Shown: piece after piece, positions 20,891 to 58,775 of the stretch
How positions within the stretch are numbered: the first letter of the stretch is position 1
Layout: each line of letters opens with the position of its first letter
NCBI GenBank assembly: GCA_043228905.1
Contig: JBHGNT010000011.1
Location: 6,014,001-6,078,000, forward strand
Source: Azolla caroliniana
Lineage: Eukaryota; Plantae; Polypodiophyta
Length of the DNA: 64,000 bases
Direction of reading: 5' to 3'
The notes under the pieces: generated by a model
Seen by the model: only the letters and a program-made list of their open reading frames with translations
What the model was told of the DNA's origin: nothing
Database searches by the model: none
Translations under genes and position numbers: made by a program

Positions 20891-22409
20891 TATCCAAGGA
20901 TTTCGCGTTGTGGAACCCTCCGATGGAAGAACCACAAGAAAGTGGATTGCAGCTGATCAAAGGTTGTTATTGCTGGTAAATCCATCTGTGAATGCCAAAA
21001 CGCCACTCACCCATCCAATGTTAACCCAAACTCCATCATTTTCGACTGGTGCGTTGTCATGGCGTCGCTTGCCTAGAAGCGTAGCGTTGCGTAGACAAAA
21101 GATATTGTGAAAGTGAGGAAGGAATCACTGGGATTATGGATGGAAGAAACGAAAGAGTAGAGATAGAGTAAATAGAGATCAACAATATATGACAAGATAG
21201 GATATTGAATGATATTTGAAGGAATAAAAGAGATTTATAATTTTTTTTATCAAAGAGTTACAAAAGTGGTTGTAACCATCGTTAATCCTTCGAACTTGGT
21301 CTCACAAGATAATCGCTCTTCTCTTTCTTGATAGTAGGCCACAACAATCTTCCCTTCAATATTTTGATAAAGATAAGGCTCGAACTGCCTCCCTCTTGTT
21401 GAGAGTTGACCACCACGATCGCCAAGTTAAAGCTCCACCTTTATGTTGAACTTCTTCCTTTCTTTCTCTATTTTATGGTATAGGTGCCCCCATGCATATG
21501 ATGCATTGGAGGGTACAAATATATGGCATAAGAATAAACATGAAAATATAGTTTTACAAACAAAGGACCTAGCCTAATGGTAAGTTTGTTGACTTTGGTA
21601 TATGAGGTTGTGGGTTTGAGTCTCTCAAACATTATTGAATTTACAACATGTAACATCGTTTTTATATCATGAAGCAAATCCTTTATTTTATATATATTAT
21701 TAGTATAGAGTAAATGGTAAGATTTGAAAGTCATAGGGTGGGGTTATTGGTTCAAGTTCTCTCTTGTTCGTGTAATATAATATATTTATATATAGTATTT
21801 TTCTTTACATATATATAATATTATCATATGTGTTGTTAATATTATCTTTATATATAAAACATTGGGTCGAAGCACGCTACGGGGTACCAAAAAAGTACTG
21901 TTTTTGGCCACAAAAATTGTCAGTACTTTCAATACTGTTAGTACTGAATAATTCAGAAAAAAAATTAGAGAAAAAGAAAATCGATTTTGGAGAGTGGGGT
22001 GACTGTAGTACAAGTGTCATTTACTGTAGAAGGAGTGGGGGGAACACGTGAGGAGATGTTCTTCCATTTTGGGGGCTATTTTCCCCTCACGTCGATTTTG
22101 GCGCTTCCCCTCACGTCGTTTTGGCGATTCCCCTCATACTGTTCTTCCTCTATCTCTCTGAGCTTTTCATCACAGACATCCATGTCACGTTTCTGATTTT
22201 CCTTCAATCTAAATCTCAGACATCCATGTCTGGTTGGAGAGTTTGAGTTGAGGATTTCTGATTTTTTTAGGGTTTCTGTTTTTGTTAGGTTTCGGTTGAG
22301 GTACAGAGACTGTTCTGAGGGTTTAGGTAGCAGCCAATAGTCACTTCTTTGACAACGACTTTCGTACTTCCACCGATTGCAGTTGATGTCGTGGTGATTT
22401 GGGGCTTTT

Positions 22410-23205
22410 TCCACCAAATCGAGGCGGCATTGGAGGTTCCTTCCACCAAATCGAGGCGGCATATCCAACGCTCCCTCCACCATTGGAGGTTCCTTCCACC
22501 AAATCGAGGCTGCATATCCACGCTCCCTCCACCATTGGAGGTTCCTTCCACCAAATCGAGGCGGCATATCCAACGCTCCCTCCACCATTGGAGGTTCCTT
22601 CCATCCTTTTTTTTATTTTCAGTACTAAAATGTTTCATTTCTTCATATTTCAGTACTAAATTTTTAGAATTGACATTTGCCATATTTGATATGTAATTCT
22701 AATGTTTGAAACAAAATATTTCTCACTTTGCAGGCCACATTTAAAAACATTTGATTGTGTTTTCTTGGTTGAGTCTATATATCCACGCTCCCTCCACCAT
22801 TGGAGGTTCCTTCCATCCATTTTTTTCATTTTCAGTACTAAAATGTTTCATTTCTTCATATTTCAGTACTAAATTTTTAGAATTGACATTTGCCATATTT
22901 GATATGTAATTCTAATGTTTGAAACAAAATATTTCTCACTTTGCAAGCCACATTTAAAAACATTTGATTGTGTTTTCTTGGTTGAGTCTATATATCCACG
23001 CTCCCTCCACCATTGGAGGTTCCTTCCATCCATTTTTTTTCATTTTCAGTACTAAAATGTTTCATTTCTTCATATTTCAGTACTAAATTTTTAGAATTGA
23101 CATTTGCCATATTTGATATGTAATTCTAATGTTTGAAACAAAATATTTCTCACTTTGCAGGCCACATTTAAAAACATTTGATTGTGTTTTCTTGGTTGAG
23201 TCTAT
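22410..23205 (+). repeat. About 3 x 52-53-bp units followed by 3 x 212-bp units upstream of the transposase
   Basis: ccaccaaatcgaggc.gcatatcc.acgctccctccaccattggaggttcctt units; 212/213-bp period (22582, 22794, 23007), each unit with two AGTACT. Confidence 0.9.
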
Positions 23206-23262
23206 ATAACATTAACTACTTTCGCAAGACACTTAATTTTTGTGGATAAATCTAGTGACCGA

Positions 23263-26200
23263 ATGGGGGTTCCTAACGAGAGTGAGTTGTCAAGTAACTC
23301 ATGCATATCTGAAAGGACTAAGAGACGAGTGGTTCTTCACATAGTTCGTTATTTGGTAGAAATAACGAAGAGATTTAGTGAAGAGGATCGTAGGGATATT
23401 ATTTGTAGAGTGTTACACCATCAAAGTTTGAATGAAGACATGGAGAGAATAAAATTTAGGGACCAATGTGTTTCAGAAGAGATTGTGGAGTCTATGAAGT
23501 CATCCCTAGACTTAGTGAAAGGTGTAGAGAGCTTAGACAAACTTGCTGCAAAGAGGGCAGCCCTACACATGGTTGTGAATGGTGTGAGAGAAAAAAAATA
23601 TAGTGATACTAAAGTTGCCTTAGCCCTGGGTATTCAAAGAAGGAACTTGAGGAAACATCGCCGAAATATACACTCAAGCAAATTCAAGTGGCTGGGGTCG
23701 GGACGTAGACGACGATGTGATGCCTTATCTCAAGAGATTATTGAGAAAGTGGATTCATTTTGGGCCAAAAATACGCGTGTCTCACCAAATAAGAAGGACG
23801 TGTGTAGACAACGAATAAGTCAGGGTAAGTACCAGATTCACCCTAGACACTTCTTGGAGATGACAGAGGTATTCCATTTTTTTATATCAATTCACATTCC
23901 ATAACTTTGTGTTTTGACCAAGTGTATATTAATGTTTGCTATATATATTGGTTGATGTAGGCTGAATTGTACATGAACTTTAAAGACCAACATCCAAGCT
24001 TGACTGTCGGATTCCGCAAGTTCCAAGGTTTGAAACCATTTTATGTTAGAAAATTAAATGAGAGGAATACATGTTGTTGTGTGTACCATGTGAAGATGGA
24101 CATGTTAAGGGTTTCTGTGAATGCAATGCGTACTGATTCTAAGGGTATACATGGGGAATTATGTGTCTGCACTTGTGAGATTTGTAGACCAAATGGGGAG
24201 GATAATAGGTGTAATGCACGAAACATGACTTATGCATCCGTTTCTGAGCTATGGAGGTCTTGTGTTTGTGAAAAAGAACCATCGTGTGAGTGGCATCGTC
24301 GTACATGTCTATTAAGAACATGTAAGGTTTGTCCGCTACCATTATTTTGTAGGCAGGAGCTTGATATGGGAAATAGTCATATCTTGAAATGGAAATATTT
24401 GGAGTATGTGACTGAAAATATTGGCAAGGGAGTTGTAACTAAGCGTATCAAGGAAGTATATAAGGAGACATGTGCTGCTACCCTTGTCTCAGAATTTAAG
24501 AAACAACTTGGGGAGTTTATTCCACATAACTTCCGGAGTTATTGGCAAAATTCACAGTTCAAGGAATGTATTAATAACTTACCAACGGGTGTCATTGTAT
24601 CCGTTATTGATTTTGCAGAAAACTATACATTTAAAGTTCAAAATGAGGTTCAATCAATGCATTGGTACAATGATCAATGTACAATACTTGTACATATTTG
24701 CTATTGGAGGCAAGACGGTGAGTTACATAAGAAATCAATATTTTACATTTCAGATGATAAAAAGCATGATACACTATTTGTTCAACATTGTTTTAAGCTT
24801 CACCATGCAGATTTATTTTCTCTAGGGTTAACCTTTAACCGTCATTGGGTTTGGTCTGATGGTGCTGCCTCGCAGTTTAAGGCGGCACGATCGTTCTACT
24901 TTACCGCCAGGTAATTTTTAATCCATATGTTTAATACTTATCATGCAATGTGTAAGGAAGTAAATCTTGTGTTAGTGGATGCATACTAATTATGTTTGTA
25001 ACTATTAACAAACAGTACTAGTCACATCGATGCATACTAATTATGTTTCTAACTATTCGAATCTTGCACTTGTGAATGGATGCATGCATACTAATTTTGT
25101 TTGTATTATGTTGTACTAAGTAACTTTTAATCCATGTGAAGTGTTCTCCATAGACACATTGTACTATGTTGTGTGTTGGTTCTGTACTATGTTGTGTTTA
25201 CAAAAGGATGTAAAGTACTCATCTTGTACTCATAGTATTGTCCGTCCTTAAGAGAATTGTACTAAGTATCGATTAATCCATGTGAAGGGTTCTCCATAGA
25301 CACATTGTACTATGTTGTGTTTACAAAAGGATGTAAAGTACTCATCTTGTACTTATAGTATTGTCCGTCCTTAAGAGAATTGTACTAATTATGTTTTAAT
25401 CCATGTGAAGGGTTCTCCATATACACATTGTACTATGTTGTGTGTTGGTTCTGTACTATGTTGTGTTTACAAAAGGATGTAAAGTACTCATCTTGTACTT
25501 ATAGTATTGTCCGTCCTTAAGAGAATTGTACTAATTATGTTTTAATCCATGTGAAGGGTTCTCCATAGACACATTGTACTATGTTGTGTGTTGGTTTTGT
25601 ACTATGTTGTGTTTAGAAAAGGATGTAAAGTACTCATCTTGTACTTATAGTATTGTCCGTCCTTAAGAGAATTGTACTAATTATGTTTTAATCCATGTGA
25701 AGGGTTCTCCATAGACTCATTGTACTATGTTGTGTGTTGGTTTTGTACTATGTTGTGTTTACAAAAGGATGTAAAGTACTCATCTTGTACTTATAGTATT
25801 GTCCGTCCTTAAGAGAATTGTACTAATTATGTTTTAATCCATGTGAAGGGTTCTCCATAGACACATTGTACTATGTTGTGTGTTGGTTCTGTACTATGTT
25901 GTGTTTACAGGAGGATGTAAAGTACTCATCTTGTACTCATAGTATTGTCCGTCCTTAAGAGAATTGTACTAAGTATCGATTAATCCATGTGAAGGGTTCT
26001 CCATAGACACATTGTACTATGTTGTGTGTTGGTTTTGTACTATGTTGTGTTTACAAAAGGATGTAAAGTACTCATATTGTACTTATAGTATTGTCCGTCC
26101 TTAAGAGAATTGTACTAATTATGTTTTAATCCATGTGAAGGGTTCTCCATAGACACATTGTACTATGTTGTGTGTTGTATCTGTACTATGTTGTGTTTAC

Positions 26201-27210
26201 AGGAGGATATAAAGTACTCATCTTGTACTCATAGTATTGTCTGTCCTTAAGAGAATTGTACTAAATCAGTATTTACTCATGTTGTACTCATAGTATTGTA
26301 CTCATCTTGTACTCACCAAAGTAGGTATTTCTCCTTATTCAATATTCGTATGCAATGGAATTACTTCGGGTCTGGACATGGAAAAGGAGAGCATGATGGC
26401 GCGGGGGCTGTGATCAAACGTGCCCTTACAAGTGAGCAGTTGGATAATAATGGCGCTAAGTTACAAAATGCACATGATGTTGTGCAGTGGCTAACATGGA
26501 AGATGTCAAATGATGGTAAGAACAGATTGTTTGTTGAAGTTCGCGCTGATGAGGTCGATAGAACTAAATCATATGGTTGTAAAACCGTGAAAGGGACACG
26601 CAGCACCCATTGTGTGTTAGGGTTTAGCCGCAAGGACACAACCCAATTGTTACTCCGTAGTTTATCATGCTTTTGTTCCATGTGTCTAGATGAAGCTTGG
26701 GATAAATGCATCAACCTATCAATCGTGGAGCCCTGGAAGCTGCAGAAGCTTGAGCCTGAACTACAAGATGATATTGAAGAGGATGTGCATTCAAACGATA
26801 TTGTATACTACAACCAAAATCAAGACTTGGCAGTTTTATTGGAAGTTGGAGATCATTTTGCAGTGCTCAAATATTCTCAGAATGAAGATTTAGAAGACTA
26901 CTACATTGTGGTGTGCAAGCAAGGAAAGACATTATTGAAAGAAGTGGTGAGGGATGGTTGGGGCAACAATTTCAACGTTGGTGAGTCTGTCGTGTATGGA
27001 AACTATTATGCAAAGTTGCCGCAGTGCAAGAACACATATGCATTACTAAAAGAAGCACCCATCGCAATAATCTACGCTGATGCCATTCTTGCGATCAAAT
27101 TCAATATGACTCAAGCAAAGCACAAGGTTAAGGGATACAACACTGTCTACAAGGTCCCCCAAGAGGTTCATGAGCACATATTAGGGGAGGTCTCTCTATT
27201 TAATGCTTGA
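23263..27210 (+). CDS. Sola2-like DDD transposase, 3 exons (23263-23868, 23961-24910, 26325-27210), about 813 aa, intact
   Basis: GT-AG introns in matching phase; motifs DFAENY, WSDGAASQFK, GHGKGEHDG; Cys-rich region; the exon 2/3 junction FYFTAR|YF aligns with the unspliced FYFVGRYP of element B. Confidence 0.87.
25127..26265 (+). repeat. 8 tandem units of 146 bp (one 123 bp) in transposase intron 2
   Basis: atccatgtgaag recurs at 25130, 25276, 25399, 25545, 25691, 25837, 25983 and 26129; about five GTACT per unit. Confidence 0.95.
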
Positions 27211-28324
27211 AAGTCACCCTATCAATACATTGTACTAGAAAACTGAAAAACATCCACTTGGAGTTCACTATTAATTTTGATGATTGACAAATGAATTGAT
27301 ATATTTCGTCTTTCTTCCAAAGGGTTTATGCCTCTCAACCACTTGTACTTATCTTTCATAATATATTAGTTGTTATCAACAGGACTTGGATTTCTTCATT
27401 GCCGATATTGCTCATGTTTCCTGATGTTATTTGAGCATAGGAGTTTTGTAGAGTTGGTGTGTCCTCTGTTGGCACATAAATCTGCTCTTCTTTTGCTACC
27501 AAGAGAAGATTGTTAGTTGAATTCATTAAAGACTTTAATATTGTAAGATTTTCTACTGTAAGTTCATTTTTCAAAGGGGGCGATGAATTCTGTGAAGACA
27601 ACAATGAAAATTATTCTCTCAGAATCCTTTTTTGTTTCATGATATGTCCTGTGAAGCCATCTGAGTTTTTACTTCTTGTATATAAGTCCTGAATATCCAG
27701 GCTATGGATTTTAAAGTACAAACCTTCCTTTCCTTAACAAAATAATCCAACTTCTGAAACAATAATTTGTGATAGCTCAAAAAGGTAAGTGTTTCCTTAC
27801 TACTGTTAGTGGATGATTCATCCTTTGGGATGATATCATCAAAATATGGCCCACATTGCTTCAACAATTTGCACACATTCTGGTTACCGTCCAAATGGGA
27901 TTGATGAAACAGTCTATACTTCAGGATATCTTCAATAACACCCGATACCCGATATTTTCTGTTTCTCATCATCAACACCTAAAAACCTAAATTTTCCTAG
28001 CAAGCTAAGAAGACTTTCAAGCATTTTATCTACAATAGACTGAAAGACTTTGCGAGGATTAGGAGATGATCTCAAAAAAGAAACAAAACGTTGTAAAATA
28101 AGAATACTTAGATCAAAAAGTATATTCCCATTGTTTTTGATATATGTTGATGAGCAAAATATAGAAGCAATCCTTAAACATGAACTTGATTTCACACTGG
28201 TATAACTATTTCAGATTCATGAACTGGATTTTTTACATTGGCAATTGAAACAGTATTTTGGTATCCAAATAGTTCAATTTCAGACATCACTAACAACTAA
28301 AGTTCAAGTACAATCGAAAGACAA

Positions 28325-31300
28325 TCAGGCACTAGAGGGTAACTTGGCCGATCTTGTAATGCGCTTGTTGTTGGTGCCAGATTTTTCTGATTTTACATTC
28401 TTCTTTATCTTAAAGCCTTTAGGTATGAGCTGACTAAGTGGCACTTCATCATCAGAGGCATCAGAGACAGGCGTGGATGCGCGGGCACCTTGTACTGGTG
28501 GCAAGCTTGAGAGAGCAACTATGTTTTCTGCAACTGCAATGCTTGTACACAAATCCACAAAGGTGCTGTCGATAGACAAATTATCACTCATCTCCTGAAT
28601 GCTTGTACTCCTAGCGATCTTTATTGCCCTATCATCATCACCGATGCCTATACACTCGTTCTTATTAGACTCCTGTATGTGGACCGTGGCAGTAGTCATG
28701 GTCAACTCCTCTTGTACGATGGATGTCACCTCATTCTTAAGACAACGTTGTTCGCTCTGAGTACAATCAGGCCCACCTTCATTAGTAACGTTGTTCACTC
28801 TACACTCCTCATGGGATTCTGTACAATCAGGCTTATCTTCAGGGAAAGCGATGTTCTTTCCACGATCCTCATGGGCTTCACAAGACACTACTAGCACATT
28901 CTCAGTACAATCAAGCTCCTCTTCATTACTAGCAATGTTCTTTCCATGATCCTCATGGGAATCTTTAGATAGTACTAGCACATTATCAGTACAATCAGTC
29001 TTCTTTTCAGCACTTGCCACATTATCAGTACAATCAGTCTTCTCTTCAGTACTTGCCATATTCTTTCCACACTCTTCATGGGCTTCAATCTTCTCTTCAG
29101 TACTTGCCATATTCTTTCCACACTCATAGGCTTCTTTAGACATAGTGTTGTTTGTACATGCCAGCTGCTCTTCACATATGAATGCTTCGTTTTTCTCACA
29201 ATCCTCATGTGTGGAAGATGTGCTTCTAGAATCTGCCTCCTTGCAAAGGTTAATTTGATTCTGACTCTGATGGGAATCTGATTCTGCACTTGTGCTCCAT
29301 GAAGTTCCCGATTCATTTGATTGCAGTTGGGAATCAGACTGCTCTTGTAAACCTAATTAATGGGATTCCAAAGAATATTGGTATGAACTCACATACTCAA
29401 AAGTTTGCAAACAATGAACATAGGGTTTAGGGCCACATTTTTACCTAATGTTACATCGTCATACTGTACAGCCGTAGATACCCCATTGCAAGTGGTGGGC
29501 TCGGTCATCTTCTCCACAACATCTAGGTGCTCAACAGTGTTGTTATGATCTATAATAACAACAAGAATAGGGTTGTTATGAGCTAAATCATTGTTTTCAA
29601 AGTCTGGCTTTTGACGTGTACCTGGGAGTGTGATAAATTCGTCTTCATGATCAGGTTTTGGACTCGTATCTCCGTCACCAAATATCATTTCATCATCAGC
29701 TAGTAACACAAGTACATGGTATTAGACAATGGATTAGGTTGACAATGCTCCAGACAGGTGAGAACTTATATGACTCACCATTGCATTCAACTTTGCCTTT
29801 CTTGCCGTTTCCATACAACATTCTTGCAGCATTTCTCTTCTTACTGGGCTCTATTTGTAAAGAAACTGCATTTCTCTTCTTAGTGGGCTCTATTTCTTGA
29901 TGTTGACCGGAGCTTGGGGAATTTGTTTGTAGAAGCATATGTTCCACTGCTCCAATGGCCCTTCTCATACATTCATCCTCATCATAAAAATCATAGGTTA
30001 TTGGTAATGATGGTCCCTGAACCTTGGAATGTGCAGCAGATATTGAGGGTTTAGGCATAGGGGCTGGTTGTTCCATTACCTTCCCTGGCGTGGAGTTGCT
30101 TGACACTACAACATTCATTGCAAGAAACAAAAAAACCTTGATTGTTAGTACCATCATCTAAAATATATAATGTAGGTCACAAGAGCTGCTTCCCATTTTA
30201 CACAATGTACCAGTCATGAACAATGTACTACTCACATAGTTCCTAAATTATTGAACTAGTACTAATAAGGAACACTGTACTGCTCACTTAGTTCCCAATT
30301 TACACGATTAGTACTAATCATGCACAACATACACAAGTAGTACTAATCATGTGTTGGGATTTCGGTCCCTCCGGATGGGATGTCCGGAGATGAATGACGG
30401 CAAGCCCGGAGGCTGTTACGGAACCGTAGGATGAAGAGTACCCGGCATGAAGCCGGATGAAGAGTACCCGGTTACGGAGCCGGTTGCTGAAGACCCCGGT
30501 TACGGAGCCGGATGCTGAAGACCCCGGTTACGGAGCCGGATGCTGAAGACCCCGGTTACGGAGCCGGATGACGTATGTACCTGGAGAGAGATCCGGATGC
30601 GGGGACATATCTGTGAATATGTTTGCCAAGGGCCCTTGAGGCTATATTTGTAAATAGCCCGAAAGTCATATGTGTATAAATATGACTTAGGGCAAACAGT
30701 TGTTGTTGTTGCTCATTTTCTGTTTTCCCACTAAGAGGGAGCGAAGTGAGAGCAGCCGAGAGAGAGTGAGAGCGAAAGAGGAAGGAAGAGGTCGACGCCT
30801 CTGTGTAATACCGCCGCCTGTGGCGAGGACAGCGAGCTCAAGGTCGTCGCCTTGCAGCTCGCCATTGTACATTCCCGCGTATAGTGATAGTTGGAGTCTT
30901 GCACTCCCGTGGTTTTTCCCATTTAGGGTTTTCCACGTAAAACATCCAGTGTACCCTTCTCTCTATTGTTTTTTCGTGTATTGTTGTATTTCCCGTTTTC
31001 TGTGAATCGATCCTGTTCCTCGGTTGTGGCCGAGCACGGAATTCCGACAAAGTGGTATCAGAGCGACGGTAACACAGAAAATGGAAGGCGGCAGCAGCGG
31101 GCAGCCGGGGATGATGGTGCTGAATGCGCAGAACTACGCCGACTGGAAGATCAAGATGGAGGACCTTCTGATTGTTCGGGACCTGTACGAACCGATTGAC
31201 AGGTCGGAAATACCGAAAGGGGTACTTGAGTCGGAGTGGAAGCTCCTGAACCGGAAAGCCGTAGCGACGATCCGACAATACGTCGACGTGAGCGTCCTAC

Positions 31301-34300: not shown

Positions 34301-37300
34301 TCATCCGGGACCGGAAGAAGAAGCAGTTGTGGATGTCACAGGAAAAGTACGTGACAAAGGTGCTTCAACGGTTCAACATGTCGGAAGCAAGACCGGTCGG
34401 ATCGACCCTCCCGGCAAACTGCAAGCTGACCAGCAAGCAAAGTCCCAAGACAAAGGCCGAAAAGGAGGATATGATGAAAGTGCCGTATGCCTCAGCCGTC
34501 GGGAGCTTGATGTACGCCATGGTGTGTACGAGACCGGACATCGGATATGCAGTCGGAGTGGTGAGCCGATACATGAGCAATCCCGGCAAAGAGCATTGGA
34601 ACGCGGCCAAGTGGATACTCCGATACCTGAAGGGTACGGCAAACGTGTGCCTCCGATTCGGCTCCGGTAAGCCCGAACTCGACGGCTTCACCGATTCGGA
34701 TATGTCGGCTGATGCAGATACCAGCCGGTCCACATCAGGGTATGTGATGACGTATGCAGGTGGAGCTGTTTCATGGCAGTCGAGGCTGCAGAAGACGGTT
34801 GCGTTGTCAACCACGGAGGCGGAGTACATGGCGGCTGTTGAAGCCGGCAAGGAAATAATATGGATGAAGGACTTCATTAGAGAGCTCGGTATCCGGCAGG
34901 AGGAGTACCGACTCTACTGCGATAGTCAGAGTGCCATCCACCTTGCGAAGAACGCGGCCTACCATTCCCGGACGAAACACATCCAGCGAAGATATCACTG
35001 GATCCGGGAAAGGATAGAAGACAAGGAGTTCGTGCTGACGAAGATCCACACGGACGAGAACGGGTCGGATATGCTGACCAAGGTGCTCACACCCGACAAG
35101 CTGGAAGCATGCCGGAAGAGGATCGGGTTGGAGAGACATCCCATGCCGAAGTGAAGGGGGAGTTTGTTGGGATTTCGGTCCCTCCGGATGGGATGTCCGG
35201 AGATGAATGACGGCAAGCCCGGAGGCTGTTACGGAACCGTAGGATGAAGAGTACCGGGCATGAAGCTGGATGAAGAGTACCCGGTTACGGAGCCGGTTGC
35301 TGAAGACCCCGGTTACGGAGCCGGATGCTGAAGACCCCGGTTACGGAGCCGGATGCTGAAGACCCCGGTTACGGAGCCGGATGACGTATGTACCTGGAGA
35401 GAGATCCGGATGCGGGGACATATCTGTGAATATGTTTGCCAAGGGCCCTTGAGGCTATATTTGTAAATAGCCCGAAAGTCATATGTGTATAAATATGACT
35501 TAGGGCAAACAGTTGTTGTTGTTGCTCATTTTCTGTTTTCCCACTAAGAGGGAGCGAAGTGAGAGCAGCCGAGAGAGAGTGAGAGCGAAAGAGGAAGGAA
35601 GAGGTCGACGCCTCTGTGTAATACCGCCGCCTGTGGCGAGGACAGCGAGCTCAAGGTCGTCGCCTTGCAGCTCGCCATTGTACATTCCCGCGTATAGTGA
35701 TAGTTGGAGTCTTGCACTCCCGTGGTTTTTCCCATTTAGGGTTTTCCACGTAAAACATCCAGTGTACCCTTCTCTCTATTGTTTTTTCGTGTATTGTTGT
35801 ATTTCCCGTTTTCTGTGAATCGATCCTGTTCCTCGGTTGTGGCCGAGCACGGAATTCCGACATCATGCACAATATACTACTCACTTAGTTACCAAATTAC
35901 ACAAGTACTAATCCCGAAAAATGTACCACTGACTAAGTCAAATTAATAAGTAGTACTAATCTTGAACAATGTACTACTCACTTATTTCCTAAATCACTGA
36001 ACTAGTACTAATCCCGAACAACGTAATGCTCACTTAGTTCCCAATTTACACAAGTAGTACTAATCATGCACAATATACTACTCACTTAGTTAGCAAATTA
36101 CACAAGGAGTACTAATGCCGAACAACGTAATGCTCACTTAGTTCCCAATTTACACAAGTAGTACTAATCATGCACAATATACTACTCACTTAGTTAGCAA
36201 ATTACACAAGGAGTACTAATCCCGAACAATGTACTGCTCACTTAGTTCCCAATTTACACAAGTAGTACTAATCATGCACAATATACTACTCACTTAGTTA
36301 GCAAATTACACAAGGAGTACTAATCCCGAACAACGTAATGCTCACTTAGTTCCCAATTTACACAAGTAGTACTAATCATGCACAATATACTACTCACTTA
36401 GTTAGCAAATTACACAAGGAGTACTAATCCCGAACAACGTAATGCTCACTTAGTTCCCAATTTACACAAGTAATACTAATCATGCACAATATACTACTCA
36501 CTTAGTTACCAAATTACACAAGGAGTACTAATCCCGAACAATGTACTGCTCACTTAGTTCCCAATTTACACAAGTAGTACTAATCATGCACAATATACTA
36601 CTCACTTAGTTAGCAAATTACACAAGGAGTACTAATCCCGAACAATGTACCACTGACTTAGTCAAATTACACAATTAGTACTAATCCTGAACAATGTACT
36701 ACTCAACAATGTACCACTGACTTAGTCAAATTACACAATTAGTACTAATCCTACAAAATGTACTACTCACTTATTTTCTAGATTACTGATCTAGTACTAA
36801 TAAGGTACAAAACTAGTACTAATAAGGAACAAAGTACTACTCAGTTCCCAAATTACAAAACTAGTTTTAATCATGAGCAATGTACTAGTAACTTAGTTCA
36901 CAAAGTACAGAACTAGTACTAATCATGAACCATGTAGTACTTACTAAGTACTAATCCAACAAATGTAGATTGGTATTTTGCACACAAGTAATACTAAACA
37001 TGATATGTCTTCTACACACCTAGTTACATAACTTGTACTAATTACACCAACAGTATTAATCTTGAACAGTATTAGTACTAAACGTGATATGTGTTTGACA
37101 CACCTCATTTCCAAATTACAATAATTGTACTATTATTCAACAATTTACTATACACCTTGTTCCCAAATTACATTACTAGTACTAATTCCCAAGTTACACA
37201 AACAATCTTAACAGTCAACAGTGTACTATAAGTATAGTGTTTACTAAACTAATACTAGGCAAGTTGCAATATAGATTGGACGATGTTGTACCTGGTTCCC

Positions 37301-38850
37301 TTTTAGTACTACTAATTGTGGAAAATATCCCTTCAGCTACACATACCAATTATATATTAAGAGTACTGCCAATACTAACCCACATAATTAGGGTTCCACA
37401 TAATAGTTGTTAGAGATTACACTAAATTTGAAGTATGAATTGTGGCATACACTAGTTCTAGTCCAAATGTTAATTGACATCATATAATACAAACAATAGA
37501 ATAGTAGAGCCACATACCGTACGGGTGTACTTTTAAACCCCAAGCATAGTACCACTCAGCCGCAATTGTAGTTTTACAGTCCATACATGTATTCTCTTTC
37601 TCAAAATGATACTTAGCACATAGCACATGATATGTGTGCAAGCATGGTGTAATCACAACATCCATAGCCTCCAGCTTGAATCCGAGGCCACAAAATATAC
37701 ACCTAGAAGATTGCAAACACAAGTTATAATATATTAGTTGCTCACTTATTTATACCAAAGAAGTAGAAATAAATAACTTTTAAAGCCAATACCGTGATAT
37801 AGCTATACTAATAATGGTACTTTCTATACCACTTGGGTGCTCAATTACAGATGGACACAAAGTATCAAAACCATTTTGTTTTAAATCCTGCATCAAGCAT
37901 GCAAGGTTCTCAGAATGCAACTTTAAGGCTGACAACTTATTATCTATTTCTTCATGTGCATTCCTGCAAGTATCAAGGTCTCTCATCTGTGAACCTAATT
38001 GAGTGCCCATATTGTTTAGCTCTTTCTTCAACTCCTCTTTCAAGACCTCACTTTCTGAATTTTGGATTGTCGATGCAATCCATTCATATGTAGTTTTTAT
38101 TGAAGAAAATTTCTTTTCTGCCTGTATCTCAGCTGATTTAACTGCTTCCAAATCAGCAAGTAGTGTTTGTATTCTTGAGCTCATAGAAGCTATGCAACCG
38201 GCCATCATCTGTTCATGCTTTTCAGTCATTGTGGCCCGTACCTTTGCCTCTAGAACTTGGTGGATAGGTGTTATAGCTAGAATATCCACATGAGAGGTTC
38301 CAGATGACTTCAAGCCAGTGTTGGTACTGGAGGACCCTTTGTAATGTTCTGACCGGTGCCGATTAAAATCTTCCCAATTTACGTCAATGCCACCTTGAAC
38401 TTCACATGCAAAAGCACGTGCAAAAACAGTACCCACCTCATTGTTAGTGATTTGATTTGTATCATAAACATGTTCGTATCTCGTCTTCAATAAATTCATG
38501 TATTCCCTCTTCAAACCACTTATGTGGAATCCTCGCCTTGTGTCGGGACGTGCTGACCCCCAGGTTTTTAACAACCACTCTCTCAGCTCTGGATACACGT
38601 CAGGTCGTGCTCGAAGGAAATAATTCCATCCAAGAGGTGTGTCTCGACTGATGGAGTGGTACATCTTCTTTCTCTGTGTTGATGAATTCATCACCCTTTC
38701 TCTTGTGGGTGTCTTCTTGCTTTCTTTCATGGGTGTCCTTCTTCCTTCCTTCACTGGTGTCTTCACTTTCTCTTTCATCAATGTCTTCTTTATGGGTGTC
38801 CTTCTCGTCATTGTCCTAGTCAACACAATTCTCAGGGAATGAATATGCAT
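28325..38850 (-). CDS. Element A accessory gene (multi-exon): unrecognised N-terminal domain, coiled coil, RING-H2, acidic repeat-rich tail
   Basis: Exon ending at 37793; intron 37792-37703; RING exon 37702-37518 (CIFC...PCLHTYHVLC...CMDC); phase-1 intron 37517-30106; further exons from 30105 to 28325. The 3' exons and degraded ORFs at 27356-28195 are uncertain. Confidence 0.65.
30440..30572 (+). repeat. 28-bp tandem repeats in the Copia U3 (also about 35255-35385)
   Basis: tgaagaccccggttacggagccggatgc units at 30488, 30516 and 30544, plus partial copies. Confidence 0.9.
31081..35154 (+). CDS. Copia gag-pol polyprotein (gag, CCHC knuckle, protease, integrase, RT, RNase H), uninterrupted
   Basis: CFHCGKPGHFRKNC, WVVDSGAS, WHKRLCH, YVDD, KHIQRRYHWIRE; PR-INT-RT-RH order. 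Confidence 0.98.
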   Translation: MEGGSSGQPGMMVLNAQNYADWKIKMEDLLIVRDLYEPIDRSEIPKGVLESEWKLLNRKAVATIRQYVDVSVLQHVANDTNAYEMWKKLSGLYERKNALNRTSLMRKIVNLKYRDGESMVEHVSTFMGFVNQLAAIKFPLEDAMQAIILMCTLPDSWENLVVTLSTSCTEDNLSLQTVKTSILNEEARRRDKEPASDSKALLTESERGRQWNRSPQRREKSGTRSQSRGRPTCFHCGKPGHFRKNCRHYRKDNGADDTDSKKSPERNGAYRGATDRRGPDRRGQDRKGTTALTASEEEIMLITEEGELNIAGDETTWVVDSGASFHLTPERRYFSSYTAGEHGCVRMGNEGTCRIAGIGDVWLTTPTGCKMLLKDVRHVPEVRLNLISAGRLDDEGYTGSIRNGVMKFSKGSLIVARARKVNTLYLMNARLCPEELNVAADTAGELWHKRLCHMSEKGMKRLAEDNLIPVKHVHLEKCTDCLAGKQNRTSFHSRSPTRRSAPLELVHTDVCQVETKSHGGAQYFVTFIDDHSRKLWTAPMKTKDQVLSVFKELHARVERESGKKLKAIRADNGGEYRGQFAEYCRSKGIRLEFTVPKTPELNGLAERMNRTIMERVRSMLAHAKLPKGFWAEAMSTATYVINRSPSVPLDGDTPQRVWTGREVSYRHLKVFGCLAYVHVAKDRRGKLDPKTRPCIFLGYGDDEFGYRVWDPVDKKIFRSRDIIFMEDKTLADWESEKKMKSSKSTGEDQLYEEQSRPERDRLALEDPAEDGEETEPAEEDENDTGTGPDPEMDSDEEESEEPVTEAPERRYPLRERRAPRRFPEPEHVLLTDEGEPESFEEAKHDTQSRRWLSAMQDEMDSLHENHTYELVELPKGKRALRNKWVFKLKPGDAENPPRYKARIVVKGFQQKKGVDFDEIFAPVVKMTSIRTVLSIAASMDLEVEQMDVKTAFLHGDLEEEIYMQQPEGFEKKGKEHLVCRLKKSLYGLKQAPRQWYRKFDSFMTDEGYHKTQSDHCVFVKKFEGGDSLILLLYVDDMLIVGRDQVKIRMLKKALHRTFSMKDLGPARQILGMHIIRDRKKKQLWMSQEKYVTKVLQRFNMSEARPVGSTLPANCKLTSKQSPKTKAEKEDMMKVPYASAVGSLMYAMVCTRPDIGYAVGVVSRYMSNPGKEHWNAAKWILRYLKGTANVCLRFGSGKPELDGFTDSDMSADADTSRSTSGYVMTYAGGAVSWQSRLQKTVALSTTEAEYMAAVEAGKEIIWMKDFIRELGIRQEEYRLYCDSQSAIHLAKNAAYHSRTKHIQRRYHWIRERIEDKEFVLTKIHTDENGSDMLTKVLTPDKLEACRKRIGLERHPMPK

Positions 38851-40063: not shown

Positions 40064-40452
40064 TACTGAGACTGACCAACTGTCACAATGGATACCTTCT
40101 CCAGGTGTGCTTTCGTACAACTCTACCTAGGAGACTGGGGCAACAATTAATGTATTAAATATGGCCTAGGGACATTTCGAGTGTGACGTACAATATCTTT
40201 GTGCATTCGAGTGTGACGTAATGAATTTGTTTTTTGTTTTTTGAAACTTATTTACAATTTTTAATGTTTATTTTCTTCTTCGATTTAGTACTAAATTTTT
40301 GGCCAAAAGTTGGTACACCGTAGCATGCTTCGACCCCATTATCAAATGTTATTTTAGTTATGTATTTATCTGATTGTAGACTTTTAATGTGAAGCTTTTG
40401 TACTTCACGACATCCACCCTCTCTAGACCTGCACATCCTCCGGCATGTGCCA

Positions 40453-44612: not shown

Positions 44613-44617
44613 CATAG

Positions 44618-49936: not shown

Positions 49937-49941
49937 CATAG

Positions 49942-51161: not shown

Positions 51162-51890
51162 GTTGATGTTGATCTTTACTTTAGATGTCTCTTCTACTTC
51201 CCCGTTTCATGTCGGGTTCACCAAATTGTGTCGTGGTGTCGCTTGCCTAGAAGCGTAGCGTTGCGTAGACAAAAGATATTGTGAAAGTGAGGAAGGAATC
51301 ACTGGGATTCTGGACAGAAGAGACGAAAGAGTAGAGATAGAGTAAATAGAGATCAACAAGATATGACAAGATAGGATATTGAATGATATTTGAAGGAATA
51401 AAAGAGATTTATAAAAAAAATTTATCAAAGAGTTACAAAAGTGGTTGTAAGCGTCGTTGATCCTTCGAACTTGGTCTCACAAGATAATCACTCTTCTCTT
51501 TCTTGATAGTAGGCCACAACAATCTTCACTTCAATATTTTGATGAAGATAAGGCTCAAACCGCCTCCCTCTTGTTGAGAGTTGACCACCACGATCGCCAA
51601 GCTAGAGCTCCACCTTTATGTTGAACTTCTTCCTTTCTTTCTCTATTTTATGGTATCTCTTATGTAATATATATTTGATTGATATCTCATACTTCTTCTT
51701 TCATCTTCTCTTTCACCATTTTAATAGGTGCCCCCATGCATATGATGCATTGGAGGGTACAAGTCATGCATGTAGTGCATGAAATGCATGTGATGCATGA
51801 TAGGCATCTCGCTCATTTGAGCTTTCATGTATGAAAAATATACATAGCATAAGAATAAACATGAAAATATAGTTTTAAAAACAAAGGACC

Positions 51891-52080
51891 TAGCCTAATG
51901 GTAGGTGTGTTGACTTTGGTATATGAGGTTGTGGGTTCGAGTCTTTGAAACATTATTGAATTTACAACATGTAACGGCGTTTTTATATCATGAAGCAAAT
52001 CCTTTATTTTATATATATTGTTAGTATAGAGTAAATGGTAAGATTTGAAAGTCATAGGGTGGGGTTATTGGTTCAAGTCC
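51891..52080 (+). promoter_or_regulatory. Two tRNA-like Pol III A-box/B-box modules in the Gypsy LTR (copies at 21570-21759)
   Basis: TAGCCTAATGG (51891) with GGTTCGAGTCT (51934); TAGAGTAAATGG (52027) with GGTTCAAGTCC (52070); start-to-start spacing 43 bp in both. Confidence 0.5.
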
Positions 52081-52739
52081 TCTCTTGTTCGTGTAATATA
52101 ATATATTTATCTATATATATATATAGTATTTTTCTTTACATATATATTATATTCTCATATGTGTTGTTAATATTATCTTTATGGGTAAAAGCATGCGAGT
52201 GGAAACACTATTATAGCTAATTAGCTACTAAAATGGCCATATCTAATTAGCTATTTGTTTAGCTAGTCTTTTTTGTGGGAAAATCAAATATTTGAAAAAC
52301 TAATTTATGAAAAAACTCAAATATTTGAACTTCTGTTTCAGACATAGTGGAACTTGGGGAATAGCACCATCATCTGAGGTCGACTTCAATGTCATCAATT
52401 TCCTGTTTAGCCTAAGTCTGATTTTGAACGCAGATGGAGTACTCAGAGCACGAACGCAGACGTAGCTCCCGCAACAGTAGAAAATCGACATTGCAGATTG
52501 AGAGCTACAACACAGAACCCGCTCGATCATCATCCAGGTATGTTTCAGTTACAGAAACCCCAAACATTTGTTTTTTCTTTTTGACTACTGTCTGAACTTT
52601 CGTGCCGATTCATATTTCCCCAAAATCGAATAGGGCGAAGTCCTTGGAGTCCCATACAAGGATGTCTCGCAAATCGGGGAGTAGCAACAGGTGTGTTTAT
52701 ATTACTTTTTTTGTGTTTAATCCTGTCTTTAGTGATGAT

Positions 52740-53210
52740 TGGGGTTTCTGATTGAAATTTCTGATTAGGGTTTTTGTTTATAAATTTCGCATTAGGGTTT
52801 GTGATTGAAATTTCTGATTAGGGTTTCTGATTGAAATTTTTTATTAGGGTTTTTGATTATAAATTTCTGATTAGAATTTCTGAATAGGGTTTCTGGTTAC
52901 AAATTTTGATTACAGATTAGAATTTTTGAATAGGGTTTTTGTTTATAAATATCTATTTAGGATTTCTGATTAGGGTTTGTGATTGAAATTTCTGATTAGG
53001 GTTTGTGATTGAAATTTCTGATTAGGGTTTTTGATTATAAATTTCTGATTAGAATTTCTTAATAAGGTTTCTGGTTACAAACTTCTGATTACAGATTTTG
53101 ATTAGGGTTTCTGATTTCAAATTTCTAAATACAAATTATGATTAGGGTTTCTGATTTTCTAAGTTAAAGATTTTGCACCATTTTTGTTGTTGTTGATTGG
53201 GGTTTCTGAT
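52740..53210. repeat. About 26-bp degenerate tandem repeats with telo-box TAGGGTTT in a likely 5' intron
   Basis: About 11 TAGGGTTT copies embedded in ctgattgaaatttctgat units; acceptor CAG just before ATG 53263. Confidence 0.85.
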
Positions 53211-53262
53211 TCTCACATATTCTGATTTTGCACTATTTCTAATTTCTGAAATGATATTTCAG

Positions 53263-56200
53263 ATGGCTCGTTCCTCCATATACGAGACTGCTAAACTTCG
53301 CAAAATTTTGTGAGACAAAGGAGGACTTCCACAACACCTATGGTCTATCACTCGAGGGTGTTGACCCTGCTGTCCTAAGTGATAAATTGATCAGTGATGT
53401 AGACTGGATGACAGTATATACAGTGCCTAGAGTCAAAGGCAAGGTCAAGCTGAAGCATGTACGAGCCGACTTGTACGATGACTGCATAAGACTGCACCAG
53501 AAAGTTCATCAGGAGATCCCAGTCAACAATGAGTTGTTAGTTTCATTTGCTAGAGCATTTGCATATGAGTGCTGCAAAACAACGAAGGAATCCAGAGACC
53601 CTGAAATGTATAGGGTAGCTTGGGTAGTCTATGGTGAGGCATCGGTAAAAAGATGCTGAAAGATGGGGACCTTGGCACAAAAAATAGACAGATTTTGGAG
53701 CATGGCAACTGTTGATGCAACTACCGACTCCCAACAAGACCGGGGGCATACACCACATTGACACCCAAGGAAAGCCAATGCCGATGATACAGGTGAGACA
53801 TTGGCTAGCTATATGCAAAAAAAATTCCATGAAGCCTGTGAGACATTGGCATTTTTTAAGACTGATTTAGAGAAAGCCACAATGGCTTCTGCAATGGAGA
53901 GCAAAGTTACTTCCGTTGTTACAATGATTAGAAATAAGATTCAGGTAACTATTGTTTTATTGGTATGTGATTGTGTTATAAATAACTTTAAGGGTAAAAT
54001 GTGCTAATCAAGCATTATCTAGAATAGGTTGCGCAACAGTAGCTTGAATTAGAGGGGCCACTGGATCCCCAGTGTAAAATACAACTGCAAATAGAGATCC
54101 AGGTTCTTTCAATGAACCTGGACCTTCTAGGTGTAAATACTGTTGCAGATTACAATTTGGATAAGCTTCAAGTAAGTTAACGATTCCTGACCAAAGTTGG
54201 TGTATCTTTCAACAACAGGAATAATTAATCGGTAAATTTCTCTGTTGCATTGAAGGAACAATACATTCATCAAGAACAGGTAGTTAGCTGCCTTAAGAAG
54301 CAGCTACATTTTGTGGAGGGAATGGTAAGGACCAGACATGATTTGGACCTGAACATTCTTGCTCCCTTACCAAATGAAGCAGAACCAGAAAATGATTTAT
54401 TGACAGTTCAAGCACATTGCATCGCTTGCGGGTTAGGTGTGGAGGACAAAACTGCGTCTTTGTTGGTTTACTTACAACCATGCAACCACACATACCATCT
54501 GCTTTGTTTTCAATATGCCTGTTGAATTGCTACATTCTGTTTGGGAGATTGCAGTACAGCTCTACCAAATGAGTGGAGAAAACTAACAGGTATACCATAC
54601 TGTAGCTAATAAGCTTAGTCTTTTCTAATTAGCTATCCTACTAGCTAATTAGCTACTGGCAACTAATTATCTATCCTACTAGCTAATTAGCTATCCTAGT
54701 AGCTAATTAGCTATTGGCAACTAATTAGCTATCATAGTAGCTAATTAGCTACTGCCATAGTTGTGTAAAGTAGCTAATAAGCTATCCTAGTAGCTAATTA
54801 GCTACTGGCAGCTAATTAGCTATCCTAGTAGCTAATAAGCTATCCTAGCTACTACATACTTGAGAAAGTAGCTAATTAGCTATCCTAGCTACTACCATAG
54901 TTAGTAAGTAGTAGCTAATTAGCTATCCTAGCTTCTACCATAGTTTAGTAAAGTAGCTAATTAGCTATCCTAAATAGCTACCATGTTATTGTAGAATCTT
55001 GTGGATTAAGGACGGCACATGATGTGTCTGGTGCTGATGACGCTACAACAGATGAGGATACTGCTGCCAACGTGGCTGAAAGTAAGAGTCCTGCTATCAC
55101 ATCTCCTTCAGATCAGCTCCACCCTATTCTTTTGGAACAGTGTACTGAATTAGGCAACGATGTGAATTGCCATGAAATAGTGGAAACAACATGTAACACT
55201 GAGGCTCACAACAACAGTGTTTATGAACACTTGATGCAACATTTCTTCGAATCTCAAGACCTTGATTCCACCCCACCGAGCCCAACTACTGAAAATGTCC
55301 AAACAGATCCCTCTGTACTTGAAAAGCTAGTTCAAGAAACGGCTGATGTGCAATTAGCTGCTGAGGCGATGGGAAGGTTGTCGGAGTAGGACACACTTGC
55401 GCATTGGGTGAAAGAAGCAAGGCTAAATGGGGAACCGACCAAAAAAAGGCTGAAGAAGGGGCCACGATCGAGAACAAGACCAGTTACTCGGTCAAGGGGC
55501 CCAGACGTAGTGGAGCGAAATACTGTTTAGTTGGATATGATTGTTAGCTTAGGGATTTTGCTAGGGTTTTATGAAGTTTTACTATCCTGTTGGACAAGTA
55601 AAACCTCAAATTGGTTGTTGCTTGATCCACATTATGTAATGGAACTCTATGATGTTTTTCCAAGATAATTTGAAGAGTGTTGTTCTATGACTGAAACTCT
55701 TTGATGTTCAGGATGTTGTTTTGTGAGACTGTTAGTTACTTTGTGAGTGTGAATATGTTGGTGTTTTTCGATGTTGCAGAGTCTAAAGGGTTTGATTCTA
55801 TTGCTCGTAAGGCCAATGGCAGTGTGGATACTGTTGATGTTGCGGCATGTTTAAAGGGCCCCATCTTGAAAGTAGATGTAGCAACTGACACAAGTGATCT
55901 GGTCACACAAGTTGATCAAGCATGTTGCACGGATGACTTGGTGTTGCAGGTAGATGCAGCATGTGATACCAGTGGACTGATATCGAGCAGATCAGTAGCT
56001 ACATGCACCGAGGTAATCCCAGGATTGATAACTAAGTCGACAAAACAAGAGCATCAGAATGTGAAGCCAGGCCCAACACAATCGACTAGGGGTTTGAAGA
56101 GGAAAAGGACGCCAGTTGTGTCGGCCAAACCTAAGCTGATTGAGATTGATTGTATCCTACCAGAAAATGGTGTAACAACGGCTCAGTTTCAGGAATGGAA

Positions 56201-56750
56201 ACCTAAACCACTAGAAGTTGAAAGAAGAGCCTTGATCTTGGAGCTTGATAAAGTCTTGATGAGTGTGAGATATATGCAGCCAAGGAGGGACATGAATTAG
56301 TTTCTAGAGTGGGCTATGCAATACTTTGATTTGTTTATTTGGAGTGAAAAACCAAAATCAGATGTGTGGAAGTGTTTGGCAAGATTCTTCCCAAAATGGC
56401 GAAGTCGTTTTAAAGGTCAATGGGCACGAGAAAATTGTGAGCAAATGGAAGCTGCAAGATTCAAGAGAATTTCTGATTTTTGGGCTACTTGGCCTGAATA
56501 TAATGCCGACAATACATTGATTTTGGATACAGAACATTTCCGGCACTACTTCAATATTCGGAGATGCTGTCTCATTCTACCTGAGGAAATGCCTGAACAG
56601 TACCTGGTGCAAACAGTGAGCTGCCAACTAGGTGCATGGTTGTGGACTCCATACTGAGCTCGATATGCGGATAATATATGTAGACTCGTTCCACTGACTA
56701 GCAAGAGCTTAGCTGTTTATAGGAGATTTGTAGACATTTCCAATGGTAAT
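53263..56750 (+). pseudogene. Element B accessory gene: NNE..FARAFA.E domain, coiled coil, RING-H2, acidic region, FCP1/NIF HAD-like domain; multiple stops
   Basis: NNELLVSFARAFAYE; CIAC...PCNHTYHLLC...CLGDC; phase-1 intron 54590-54994; LILELDKVL, FIWS and NTLILD motifs. Confidence 0.65.
54600..54982. repeat. TAGCTAATTAGCTA palindromic repeat array in the accessory-gene intron
   Basis: Repeated tagctaattagcta(tcc/ctg) units fill intron 54590-54994. Confidence 0.92.
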
Positions 56751-57120
56751 TTATAAATATGTAAAGAGATGACATTATTCAATGAAGAATTTAATTACTT
56801 GTTTCCACTGTACTTATCTATTGTGTAATTTGAGGAATATGTTGCAGATTGTTGATTTCATGCTATTGATGACTATTTAGCTATTGACAGCTAATTAGCT
56901 GCATTTGTACAACTAATTAGCTACTGGTGACTATTTCGCTATAACTTATAACTTAAAACTTAAAACTTAACAAAAAAGACATGATTTTATTGAGAAAGAA
57001 GCACAGAAAGCAGACTGTATACAAGAAATTGATTCTCAAACGAATTTATTTAACTGTTTTCGCGAAATACATGTTTGTTTTACAAGAGAACATGGTAAGT
57101 GCTACTTGTAGCTACAAATT

Positions 57121-58775
57121 CTATGGCATACTATTGTAAATACATTCATACACATTAGCACCAACAATGTATAAACCTGAGCAGCTATTGTATTCTGACA
57201 TTGGGACGTTGATGCACCTGACCAAATGAGAGTACATGTACGCCGTTGGTTTGTCTTCTAACAGCCTGTACACATATTTGTAGTCATCTAGTTTTGCATA
57301 AAAAATGCCTTTGATGTAGAATGTCTCGGTAGATACAAAATTTCCCCATGCATCTACAATATTCTGCCTTGCCCACTGTTTACTAACCGTGCACTTTAAT
57401 ATATAGAAATCAGCACCCTCTGAATTGCCTTCTTCAGCATTTACAGCGAAGTTATCCCCAACGTTCAGGACATCACTCAAAGTATCTCCAAGTCCCTCAT
57501 ATGTGAAGTCAGCATTCTGCCCTGTTTCTCCATCAACTGCTTCCTTATCATTCAGAGTGTGATACTCCCAATTCTGAATGCATGCTTTGTTTAGACAATA
57601 TCTCCAATTTCCCTGCACACAATGGAAGCAAAAACAAGTCAACTCTCTAACCGCAATACAATGATCATCCAACCTGGAATAACCTCGAACAACATGCAAA
57701 AATCGTAATTCGGGAATTCCGTGGCACTCCCAGGTCTTCTCCCTATTTACTTCATCTATCTTCACTTCCCAAAATTCACATTTGATATCTCGGACTTGCG
57801 AGGAATAAACACCTGTGGCACTCATTGACATATTTGCTGTTAAAAATTCAACTACATGTGATGCACAATTCATGTGCACACCATCTGTCTTTAGTTGTTT
57901 ATGGGTAAGTGCTCGCTTTATAACAGCCCCTGCACCATCATGTTCACCTTTACCATGGCCAGACCCAAAAAAATTCCATCTCATCTCCAAACCTGTTATG
58001 GCAGGATACCTCCCCACAAAATAAAATGGACGTCGAGCCTTGAATTGTGACGCAGCTCCGTCAGACCAGACCCAATGTTGAGTAAGCTCCAAACGTTGAG
58101 CTAATAACCACTGCCAATGTAACTTAAAACAATGTTGGACGAACAAGGTATCATGCTTCTTATCATCGGAAATAAAGAAATGAATTACTTTTTTAACATC
58201 ACCTGAAACTCGAAAATATGTTATGTGCACAAAAATGGTTACCTGAACTGAACACCAATGCATAGATTGAATTTCATTCTGCTGCTTGAAAGTATAATTC
58301 TCTGCGAAATCTACTACTGAGACTACAACATCATTTGGGAAATCAGATATGCAAGTCTTAAACTGATGGGCCTGCCATGAATAAATGAAGTTGTGTTTAA
58401 TGAACTTTCCTAGAGATACTACAAACAGAGACACCAAATCCCTTGGTTTAAGCATCTTCCGAACTAGATCCTTTCTTTTACACACCTTTCCTTCGAAATT
58501 GGTGTTCACTGACTCAAAGAACTTCACAGAGATCAATATTTCACTCCTCAATTCATTTGGACACCACCTAAATCTAGTAGGGCCACAATCTTGACATAAA
58601 CCCATGACACATTTATGAATATGGAAGATAGCGTCAGTTTCTCTCGGACACAATATTGAATCTAATAAATAACTCATGGAAGAGATAACATGCTCAAATG
58701 ATTTACACTCCTCTTGCGGGCTTGATCGACAGATTGGGCACCCACATGTGCAAACTGTATTAGTTAGGGATGCGC
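57121..58775 (-). CDS. Sola2-like transposase of element B (C-terminal about 550 aa; N-terminus cut off by a Gypsy insertion)
   Basis: DFAENY, WSDGAASQFK, GHGKGEHDG; the ORF-track N-terminal residues come from the LTR. Confidence 0.87.

Follow-up and report, generated by a model that had tools for sequence, protein, structure and literature searches.

To our knowledge, only a handful of systems, chiefly VANDAL/VANC and Spm TnpA, show at the molecular level how DNA transposons escape silencing without harming their hosts. The Sola2 superfamily of DNA transposons was reportedly described by Bao, Jurka and Kapitonov in 2009. Two-gene Sola2-Fanzor elements are known from dictyostelids, and a 4-bp AT-rich target site duplication (TSD) is given as the rule for Sola2 (PMC3627910), while in VANDAL elements the targets of the VANC protein are family-specific tandem motifs in non-coding DNA, according to the available part of PMC5735166. 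Here we describe a window of 64 kb from the land plant Azolla caroliniana (assembly GCA_043228905.1, contig JBHGNT010000011.1, positions 6,014,001-6,078,000 of the forward strand; the window is this whole stretch, and all positions below are its coordinates), in which the span 21864-58775 is a nest of transposable elements. Subtraction of the long terminal repeat (LTR) elements leaves two DNA transposons, A and B, which are two families of large autonomous-type Sola2 transposons. As a sequence-only reading of the window had proposed, the two share one architecture, with a terminal inverted repeat (TIR), a Sola2-like DDD transposase and an accessory gene convergent with it, and the non-coding DNA of each is enriched in a short word of its own.

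The Sola2-like identity, put forward in the same reading, is argued for by three motif contexts compared by eye, by the TSD and by the TIRs. The catalytic motifs of the transposases of A and B, DFAEN, WSDGAASQFK and GHGKGEHDG, may be set beside DFKEN, WSDGAKHFK and YHGKSDVD in Sola2_DFa-2 and CDFKEN, WCDNARHFK and YHGKSECD in Sola2_PPa-1 (PMC3627910, supplement). Element A spans 21864-40336, between 26-bp TIRs (GGGTCGAAGCAYGCTACGGKGTACCA) at 21864-21889 and 40311-40336, a pair of matches that no shuffle gave, and is flanked by the 4-bp TSD CATT at 21860-21863 and 40337-40340. It is 18.5 kb long, or 12.96 kb once a nested Copia element is subtracted; the sequence-only reading had let it extend to ~30 kb, and with its end at 40336 it has twice the length thereby implied. 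Among relatives, L005 has TIRs of 29 bp, and a 4-bp TSD is not evident in L005 or L013. No Pfam model matches the transposase exons (protein searches used single exons or open reading frames (ORFs), one by one and unspliced), and the transposase has homologues in liverworts, ferns, conifers, Klebsormidium and echinoderms. Classification of A and B as Sola2-type DDD transposons, as far as sequence can tell, stands with the caveat that the motifs were compared by eye only. Element B, from 52183 to ~58870, has only a left TIR, related to the end of A (GGGTAAAAGCATGCGAGTGG at 52183); neither a right end nor a second TIR was found, the DNA past 58870 being unrelated. Its transposase ORF (58824..57121, minus strand) begins ~275 residues late in comparison with relatives, and the reading frame of its accessory gene is broken by stops at 53657-53659 and at 54523-54525 (TGA, within the RING segment). 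B is hence a dead, truncated copy, a point that the sequence-only reading had missed.

The word of A is TAGTACTA, in extended form TAGTACTAAT, and that of B is TAGCTAATTAGCTA. The top 6-mers of A are GTACTA (95 copies against 15 expected) and AGTACT (51 against 9), and B has 34 copies of TAGCTA against 4.4 expected; TAGCTA is absent from A and AGTACT from B. Counted on both strands, GTACT in A reaches 37/kb in the transposase intron and 38-41/kb in the 52-bp arrays; a 213-bp array has 18/kb and the left subterminus 12/kb, against 1-2/kb in the transposase exons and 2.5/kb in the nested Copia. TAGCTA reaches 57/kb at 54586-55023 in B, with four copies in 52211-52433, three in 56658-57120 and 0-1 in each exon. 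The excess persists when each tandem array is collapsed to one unit and compared with dinucleotide shuffles (n=500): collapsed A has 45 GTACT (shuffled 10.3 ± 3.5) and collapsed B nine TAGCTA (shuffled 1.3 ± 1.0), values reached by none of the 500 shuffles in either case. Units of 213, 146 and 52 bp in A are otherwise dissimilar, yet the word is common to all; column conservation within the 52-bp array did not distinguish the word from its neighbours, the array being too young. The element-specific enrichment claimed earlier was thereby confirmed, and the accompanying claim that non-coding DNA is saturated with the motifs is overstated for the 5′ side of the accessory gene of A, with only three GTACT in 1.46 kb, and for the B intron at 52688-53260, which has a telobox-like array in place of TAGCTA.

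Across families the words are 6-14 bp long and lie at the subtermini, in intron arrays of both genes and in the convergent spacer. In A, B and L005 they, or a core of them, also occur within or close to the element ends: the TIR tip GGGTNRAAGCAYG, the first 13 bases, is common to all families, and family-specific sequence starts just inside it. In A a GTAC core occupies TIR positions 21-24, in L005 the word GTACCACCT is TIR positions 17-25, and in B the first TAGCTA begins 5 bp past the TIR. Nor is the pattern confined to the two copies in the window. Full B-family copies from four ENA assemblies (L010-L013, 82-90% identical to B, with differing flanks, one at coverage 73) each carry 44-58 TAGCTA in the transposase intron and again in the accessory intron, and ~5 per end, and an identical 568-aa B-family transposase is present on 15 contigs (the cluster of P0001); the family looks recently active in the plant behind the L010-L013 samples. 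A metagenome scan with the TIR of A gave ten real ends and eight chance matches in G+C-rich bacterial contigs, the former being A-family ends with an AGTACT subterminus, on ten further contigs that all differ in flank. The left 3.5 kb of A has a 97% copy in L021. The layout recurs with other words in three further lineages: GGTAGCTACC (L001, L002 and L007), GTACCACCTG (L005) and TGTGCTAT (L006). Lack of motif enrichment in other members of the families, set by the sequence-only reading as its first refuting outcome, was therefore not what was observed. The motifs had been called palindromic, and this is so in three of the five motif classes (A, B and the L001 type), the other two being non-palindromic.

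A second gene convergent with the transposase is found in both A and B. Its protein starts with a basic tail, continues with a helical, hitherto unnamed N-terminal domain of ~150 aa (N-domain), a coiled coil and a RING-H2-like finger, and has beyond these an acidic linker and, in most lineages, a NIF/FCP1-like HAD domain. N-domain, coiled coil and RING are convergent with the transposase in L001, L005, L006, L007 and L010-L013, all of which have the NIF/FCP1-like domain downstream on the same strand (28.9-38.2 bits), and the distant L003 and L004 have a RING-like ORF at the corresponding place. A conserved, convergent RING-H2-like accessory gene, as first proposed, was therefore recovered in distant relatives; overlooked at that stage was the NIF/FCP1-like domain of B and most relatives. 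The RING ligands in A form a perfect C3H2C3 series (CxxC..CxH..H..C..CxxC), whose last pair is Cx4C in L001-type proteins and Cx3C plus a stop codon in B; the RING portion of the accessory structure model has low confidence. Scores against Pfam NIF (PF03031, cut-off 21.8 bits) are 38.2 for L001, 36.1 for L005, 34.9 for L007, 28.9 for L006 and 44.4 for P0178; in B the degenerate domain gives 18.9 bits, under the cut-off, and 27.9 bits with a family HMM. In all intact members (L001, P0122, P0124-P0127, P0178 and P0214) motif I reads LD(M/I/L)NGV and not DxDx(T/V), with the nucleophile Asp retained and the second Asp replaced by Asn (DxNGV), and because of this alteration the NIF-like domain may be a poor phosphatase or none. 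Pfam searches with the accessory protein found no family besides RING and NIF, and no homology to VANC. The pairing of RING and FCP1-like domains in a transposon-borne protein is apparently unreported: literature searches found no report of it, and full-text search, with incomplete coverage of the literature, found neither motif arrays nor a RING or NIF-like gene described for Sola elements.

We read the stretch from N-domain through RING to NIF as one gene, on the basis of a splice donor that lies directly 3′ of the RING exon in A, B and L001, and of two annotated proteins of Adiantum nelumboides, P0178 and P0214, in which N-domain and NIF are within one model. In the protein alignment, which includes contig ORFs reading past the exon end, conservation stops at this donor point. 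P0122, a further fern gene model, is chimeric. Three GT..AG joints in the 5′ half of the B-type accessory gene are visible in contigs of run X1, which are presumed to be RNA and come from a relative ~90-95% identical; given that presumption, some copy of the gene is transcribed and spliced.

Homology of the N-domain extends over A, B, L005, L006 and the L001 clade, and the model of the domain is all-helical (pLDDT 89.7, pTM 0.84). It has no relative in the PDB (Foldseek best E 1.6; VIA-align wide search, best Z 3.0), and the nearest ESM Atlas clusters by shape are Transposase_32 (TM score 0.52) and Plant Mobile Domain (PMD; TM 0.47), weak resemblances over 115-121 residues. Pfam searches with 18 N-domain sequences gave scattered weak matches, none of them to PMD or Transposase_32 at E up to 10. 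Among 1.84 billion representatives, a profile search retrieved only 169 clusters, mostly fragments and transposon-linked models; a search of the ESM Atlas by features gave nothing usable, and a fold search with the full-length accessory model returned only uninformative coiled-coil matches.

What, then, would read the word? In other cut-and-paste elements the inner TIR and the adjoining DNA are the place where the transposase binds. In A and L005 the inner TIR contains the word or its core, and in B the first copy begins 5 bp past the TIR; this favours the transposase as reader and makes it at least as likely a candidate as the accessory protein. The reading that we prefer, though we would put it no higher than an even chance, is that a sequence-specific DNA-binding protein encoded by the element, most probably through a variable part of the transposase N-terminal region, recognises the word as its binding site. 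The conserved TIR tip GGGTNRAAGCAYG would then pair with the catalytic core or with a conserved helix-turn-helix (HTH)-like segment, LG(I/T)(H/Q)RRN, of the N-terminal exon, where Pfam gives a weak HTH_8 match (14 bits). The intronic arrays would serve as a platform in cis where the reader gathers in large numbers, at cognate copies only, and would thereby keep the two genes transcribed or buffer the dose of transposase; such a role is made plausible by the Mutator transposase, which alone activates cognate copies sequence-specifically, as given in the available part of bioRxiv 10.64898/2026.08.24.746577. At the arrays, chromatin or the RNA polymerase II machinery might be the target of the RING/NIF-like protein, whose phosphatase-like domain perhaps binds rather than hydrolyses.

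Several observations weigh against this preferred reading. The HTH-like segment is constant across families whose words differ, and beyond the weak HTH_8 match no DNA-binding domain was recognised in the transposase N-terminal exon. No word dominates in L003 and L004, despite arrays at the corresponding places, and L008 and L009 have neither accessory gene nor word. The arrays are young, the 146-bp units of A being 95-98% alike, and families differ in where the array-bearing intron is placed; both facts also fit neutral expansion. As to the accessory protein, the best RING score (zf-RING_2, 22.9 bits) is under the Pfam cut-off of 27.3, no NIF domain was found in the 3′ ORFs of A even with the family HMM, and none of the contigs in three runs presumed to be RNA bridges the RING exon and the NIF exons.

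A possible but distinctly less probable alternative is that the N-domain of the accessory protein reads the word and docks on the arrays, as VANC or PMD proteins might, while the RING and phosphatase-like domains remove or block silencing of cognate copies only. This refines the proposal of the sequence-only reading, in which a protein of the element would bind its cognate motif and might ubiquitinate silencing factors. The tandem motifs targeted by VANC are a precedent, and the PMD proteins MAIN and MAIL1 act with the phosphatase PP7L and are associated with specific DNA motifs; the plant transposon clusters nearest to the modelled N-domain, the long basic N-terminal tail of the protein and an N-domain identity of just 23-36% between motif classes also speak for it. 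Against it stand the position of the word in or beside the inner TIR, where transposases bind, the lack of homology to VANC, and a fold resemblance (TM ~0.5) that is weak and accompanied neither by a sequence-level match to PMD or Transposase_32 nor by a PDB match (best Z 3.0, Foldseek E above 1). Clean co-variation is also missing: in the transposase tree B is sister to L005, but the core of its word is shared with the L001 clade. Words turn over fast, and the few families available are insufficient to settle co-variation. Extended to its full form, in which Sola2 elements of early-diverging land plants would have a self-recognition system of an origin independent of VANDAL/VANC, with intronic arrays of a fast-evolving word recruiting one protein that unites a PMD-like reader, a RING ligase and a pseudo-phosphatase docked on the phosphorylated carboxy-terminal domain (CTD) and shields cognate copies only from silencing, the idea is a speculation that we consider improbable.

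We regard as unlikely, too, a neutral origin of the arrays, in which slippage or unequal exchange would have multiplied subterminal-like sequence wherever introns and spacers tolerate it, the shared word reflecting only common descent from the end sequence of the element. Recent and homogeneous arrays, intron positions that differ between families and relatives without a dominant word speak for this, as do the different array copy numbers of A and its 97%-identical relative L021 and the unrelated telobox-like array in the other large intron of B. Neutral expansion accounts poorly, however, for a word common to otherwise dissimilar units within one element (in A those of 213, 146 and 52 bp, in L001 those of its two array regions), for an excess that outlasts array collapse, and for a layout of transposase intron, accessory intron and subtermini that recurs in five lineages with five different words. 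Least probable by far is a host-side explanation in which inverted or palindromic repeats in introns of convergent genes are transcribed by read-through, and the family is silenced by the hairpin RNA and small RNAs that result. The genes are convergent and the arrays of A, B and the L001 type palindromic, but the palindromes, of 8-14 bp, are too short for Dicer and two motif classes have none.

In its parts, element A begins on the plus strand with the TSD and left TIR (21860..21889), followed by a left subterminus (21890..23241) with three AGTACT within 60 bp of the TIR, a 53-bp array (22428-22603) and the 213-bp array (22566-23208), with two AGTACT per unit. Transposase exons 1 (23242-23904) and 2 (23967-24914) carry the HTH-like LGIQRRN, TRVSPNKKDV, DFAEN and WSDGAASQFK; the intron that follows (24915..26295) contains the 146-bp array, with 6.6 units and 51 GTACT, and exon 3 (26296..27210) the third catalytic motif, GHGKGEHDG. 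The remainder is on the minus strand. ORFs at 27637..30157, presumed 3′ exons of the accessory gene and without NIF, include a 272-aa acidic ORF with ~40-bp repeats that occupies the place of the NIF-like domain in other families; they match no Pfam family, and tblastx against all relatives was blank. Next comes the 52-bp array, interrupted by a Copia element: its left portion is at 30190..30351, and beyond the Copia a 52/104-bp array (35862-36941) with a degenerate tail (together 35863..37479) lies in the accessory intron, with 62 GTACT. The RING-H2 exon (37480..37722; CxxC-x15-CxH-xx-H-xx-C-x10-CxxC, then the splice donor G/GTATGT) and an exon (37780..38850) encoding the basic tail, the helical N-domain with its FARAFACE motif and the coiled coil precede the right TIR and TSD (40311..40340).

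In element B, the left TIR GGGTAAAAGCATGCGAGTGGAAACAC and subterminus (52183..52433) contain four TAGCTA, and the accessory gene follows on the plus strand. Its 5′ exons (~52434-52535 and ~52632-52687) have the GT..AG joints seen in the run X1 contigs, and the next intron (52688-53260) has a telobox-like 13/26-bp array without TAGCTA. This array (52701-53260) is built on TTAGGGTTT, which corresponds to the plant telobox AAACCCTAA and not to the word of the B family; the top k-mers of L003 and L004 likewise include telobox-like words (in L004 at 14282-14453). The N-domain exon (53261-53942, with the first in-frame stop) and an intron (53943-54025) are followed by the coiled-coil and RING exon up to 54589, the donor CAG/GTATAC, an intron with the TAGCTAATTAGCTA array (54590..55023; 25 TAGCTA) and the 3′ exons (55024..56657), whose NIF-like domain (56301-56654) has ELDKV as motif I. 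Between the convergent genes lies a spacer (56658..57120) with an 18-bp array (56862-56923) and three TAGCTA, and the transposase ORF of 567 aa (57121..58824, minus strand) retains DFAEN, WSDGAASQFK and GHGKGEHDG and is without the N-terminal exon.

Both transposons are embedded in retroelements. A sits in the 3′ LTR and B in the 5′ LTR of a single minus-strand Gypsy (21055-21863, 40337-40410 and 51229-52182), whose body (40453-51161, minus) is part of the intervening DNA outside A and B, and the LTR copies carrying them are 92-95% alike. A and B are oppositely oriented and were inserted only 12 bp from each other in LTR coordinates; two distinct Sola2 families at one AT-rich LTR spot suggest a target preference. 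The repeat to the left of both A and B was considered as part of the elements and rejected, being the LTR of the Gypsy that hosts both insertions. The Gypsy 5′ LTR is without its first ~86 bp, as B is without its right end. Copia 1 (30352-35862) is inserted within the 52-bp array of A and Copia 2 (44618-49936) within the Gypsy; the two are related, with bodies ~94% alike, the LTRs of each pair are nearly identical (99.7% and 99.2%, respectively), and both insertions are recent. Upstream of A, direct repeats at 13306-13851 and 19580-20121, 95.8% alike, flank a G+C-rich Gypsy-like plus-strand stretch, and 13306-20121 looks like a further LTR element. Just past the cut-off point of B is a 23-bp tandem array of TCCTTGCCGGTATGCCGTTTTCC (59431-59621; eight copies, 93% matches), adjoined by a T-arm-like stretch, GAGTTCGAATCAC, for which ARAGORN makes no tRNA call; no tRNA genes were found in the 64-kb window.

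Should the word prove to be read by a protein of the element, this Sola2 lineage would be a second case of how DNA transposons escape silencing, in an unrelated superfamily and in non-seed plants, with a clear and testable layout that combines a conserved accessory protein of three domains with short, rapidly changing words, and its five word classes, which include sister families with different words, are material for asking which protein co-evolves with the word. If the arrays are neutral, the finding still annotates an undescribed plant clade of Sola2. Compared with known Sola2 elements, A, B and their relatives are alike in the three motif contexts, the 4-bp TSD, the short TIRs, the large size (10-14 kb) and the possible presence of an unrelated second gene. 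The passenger differs, being a RING-H2-like/NIF-like protein with a new N-domain here and a Fanzor/TnpB nuclease in Sola2-Fanzor; the hosts here are land plants, and family-specific motif arrays in introns are not mentioned in the available part of the text of PMC3627910. With VANDAL/VANC (available part of PMC5735166; PMC10398659) they share an accessory gene on a cut-and-paste element and family-specific tandem motifs in non-coding DNA, but VANDALs belong to another superfamily, the Mutator-like elements, the accessory proteins are non-homologous, the word here lies within or beside the TIR, and the system here is known from sequence. MAIN/MAIL1 with PP7L (PMC7156037; bioRxiv 10.1101/2024.09.27.615353) likewise combine a transposon-derived helical domain, a link to a phosphatase and specific DNA motifs that protect transcription; the sole tie to them is the weak fold resemblance of the modelled N-domain to PMD, and the phosphatase-like domain here is of the HAD/NIF type, fused in the same protein and altered in motif I, whereas PP7L is a partner of the PPP type. 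Finally, the subterminal repeats of hAT, CACTA and Mutator elements are also short, repeated, family-specific words near the ends, with the element's own protein proposed as activator (available part of bioRxiv 10.64898/2026.08.24.746577), but in these Sola2 families the clusters are not confined to the subtermini, and the largest are found far from the ends, within introns of both genes.

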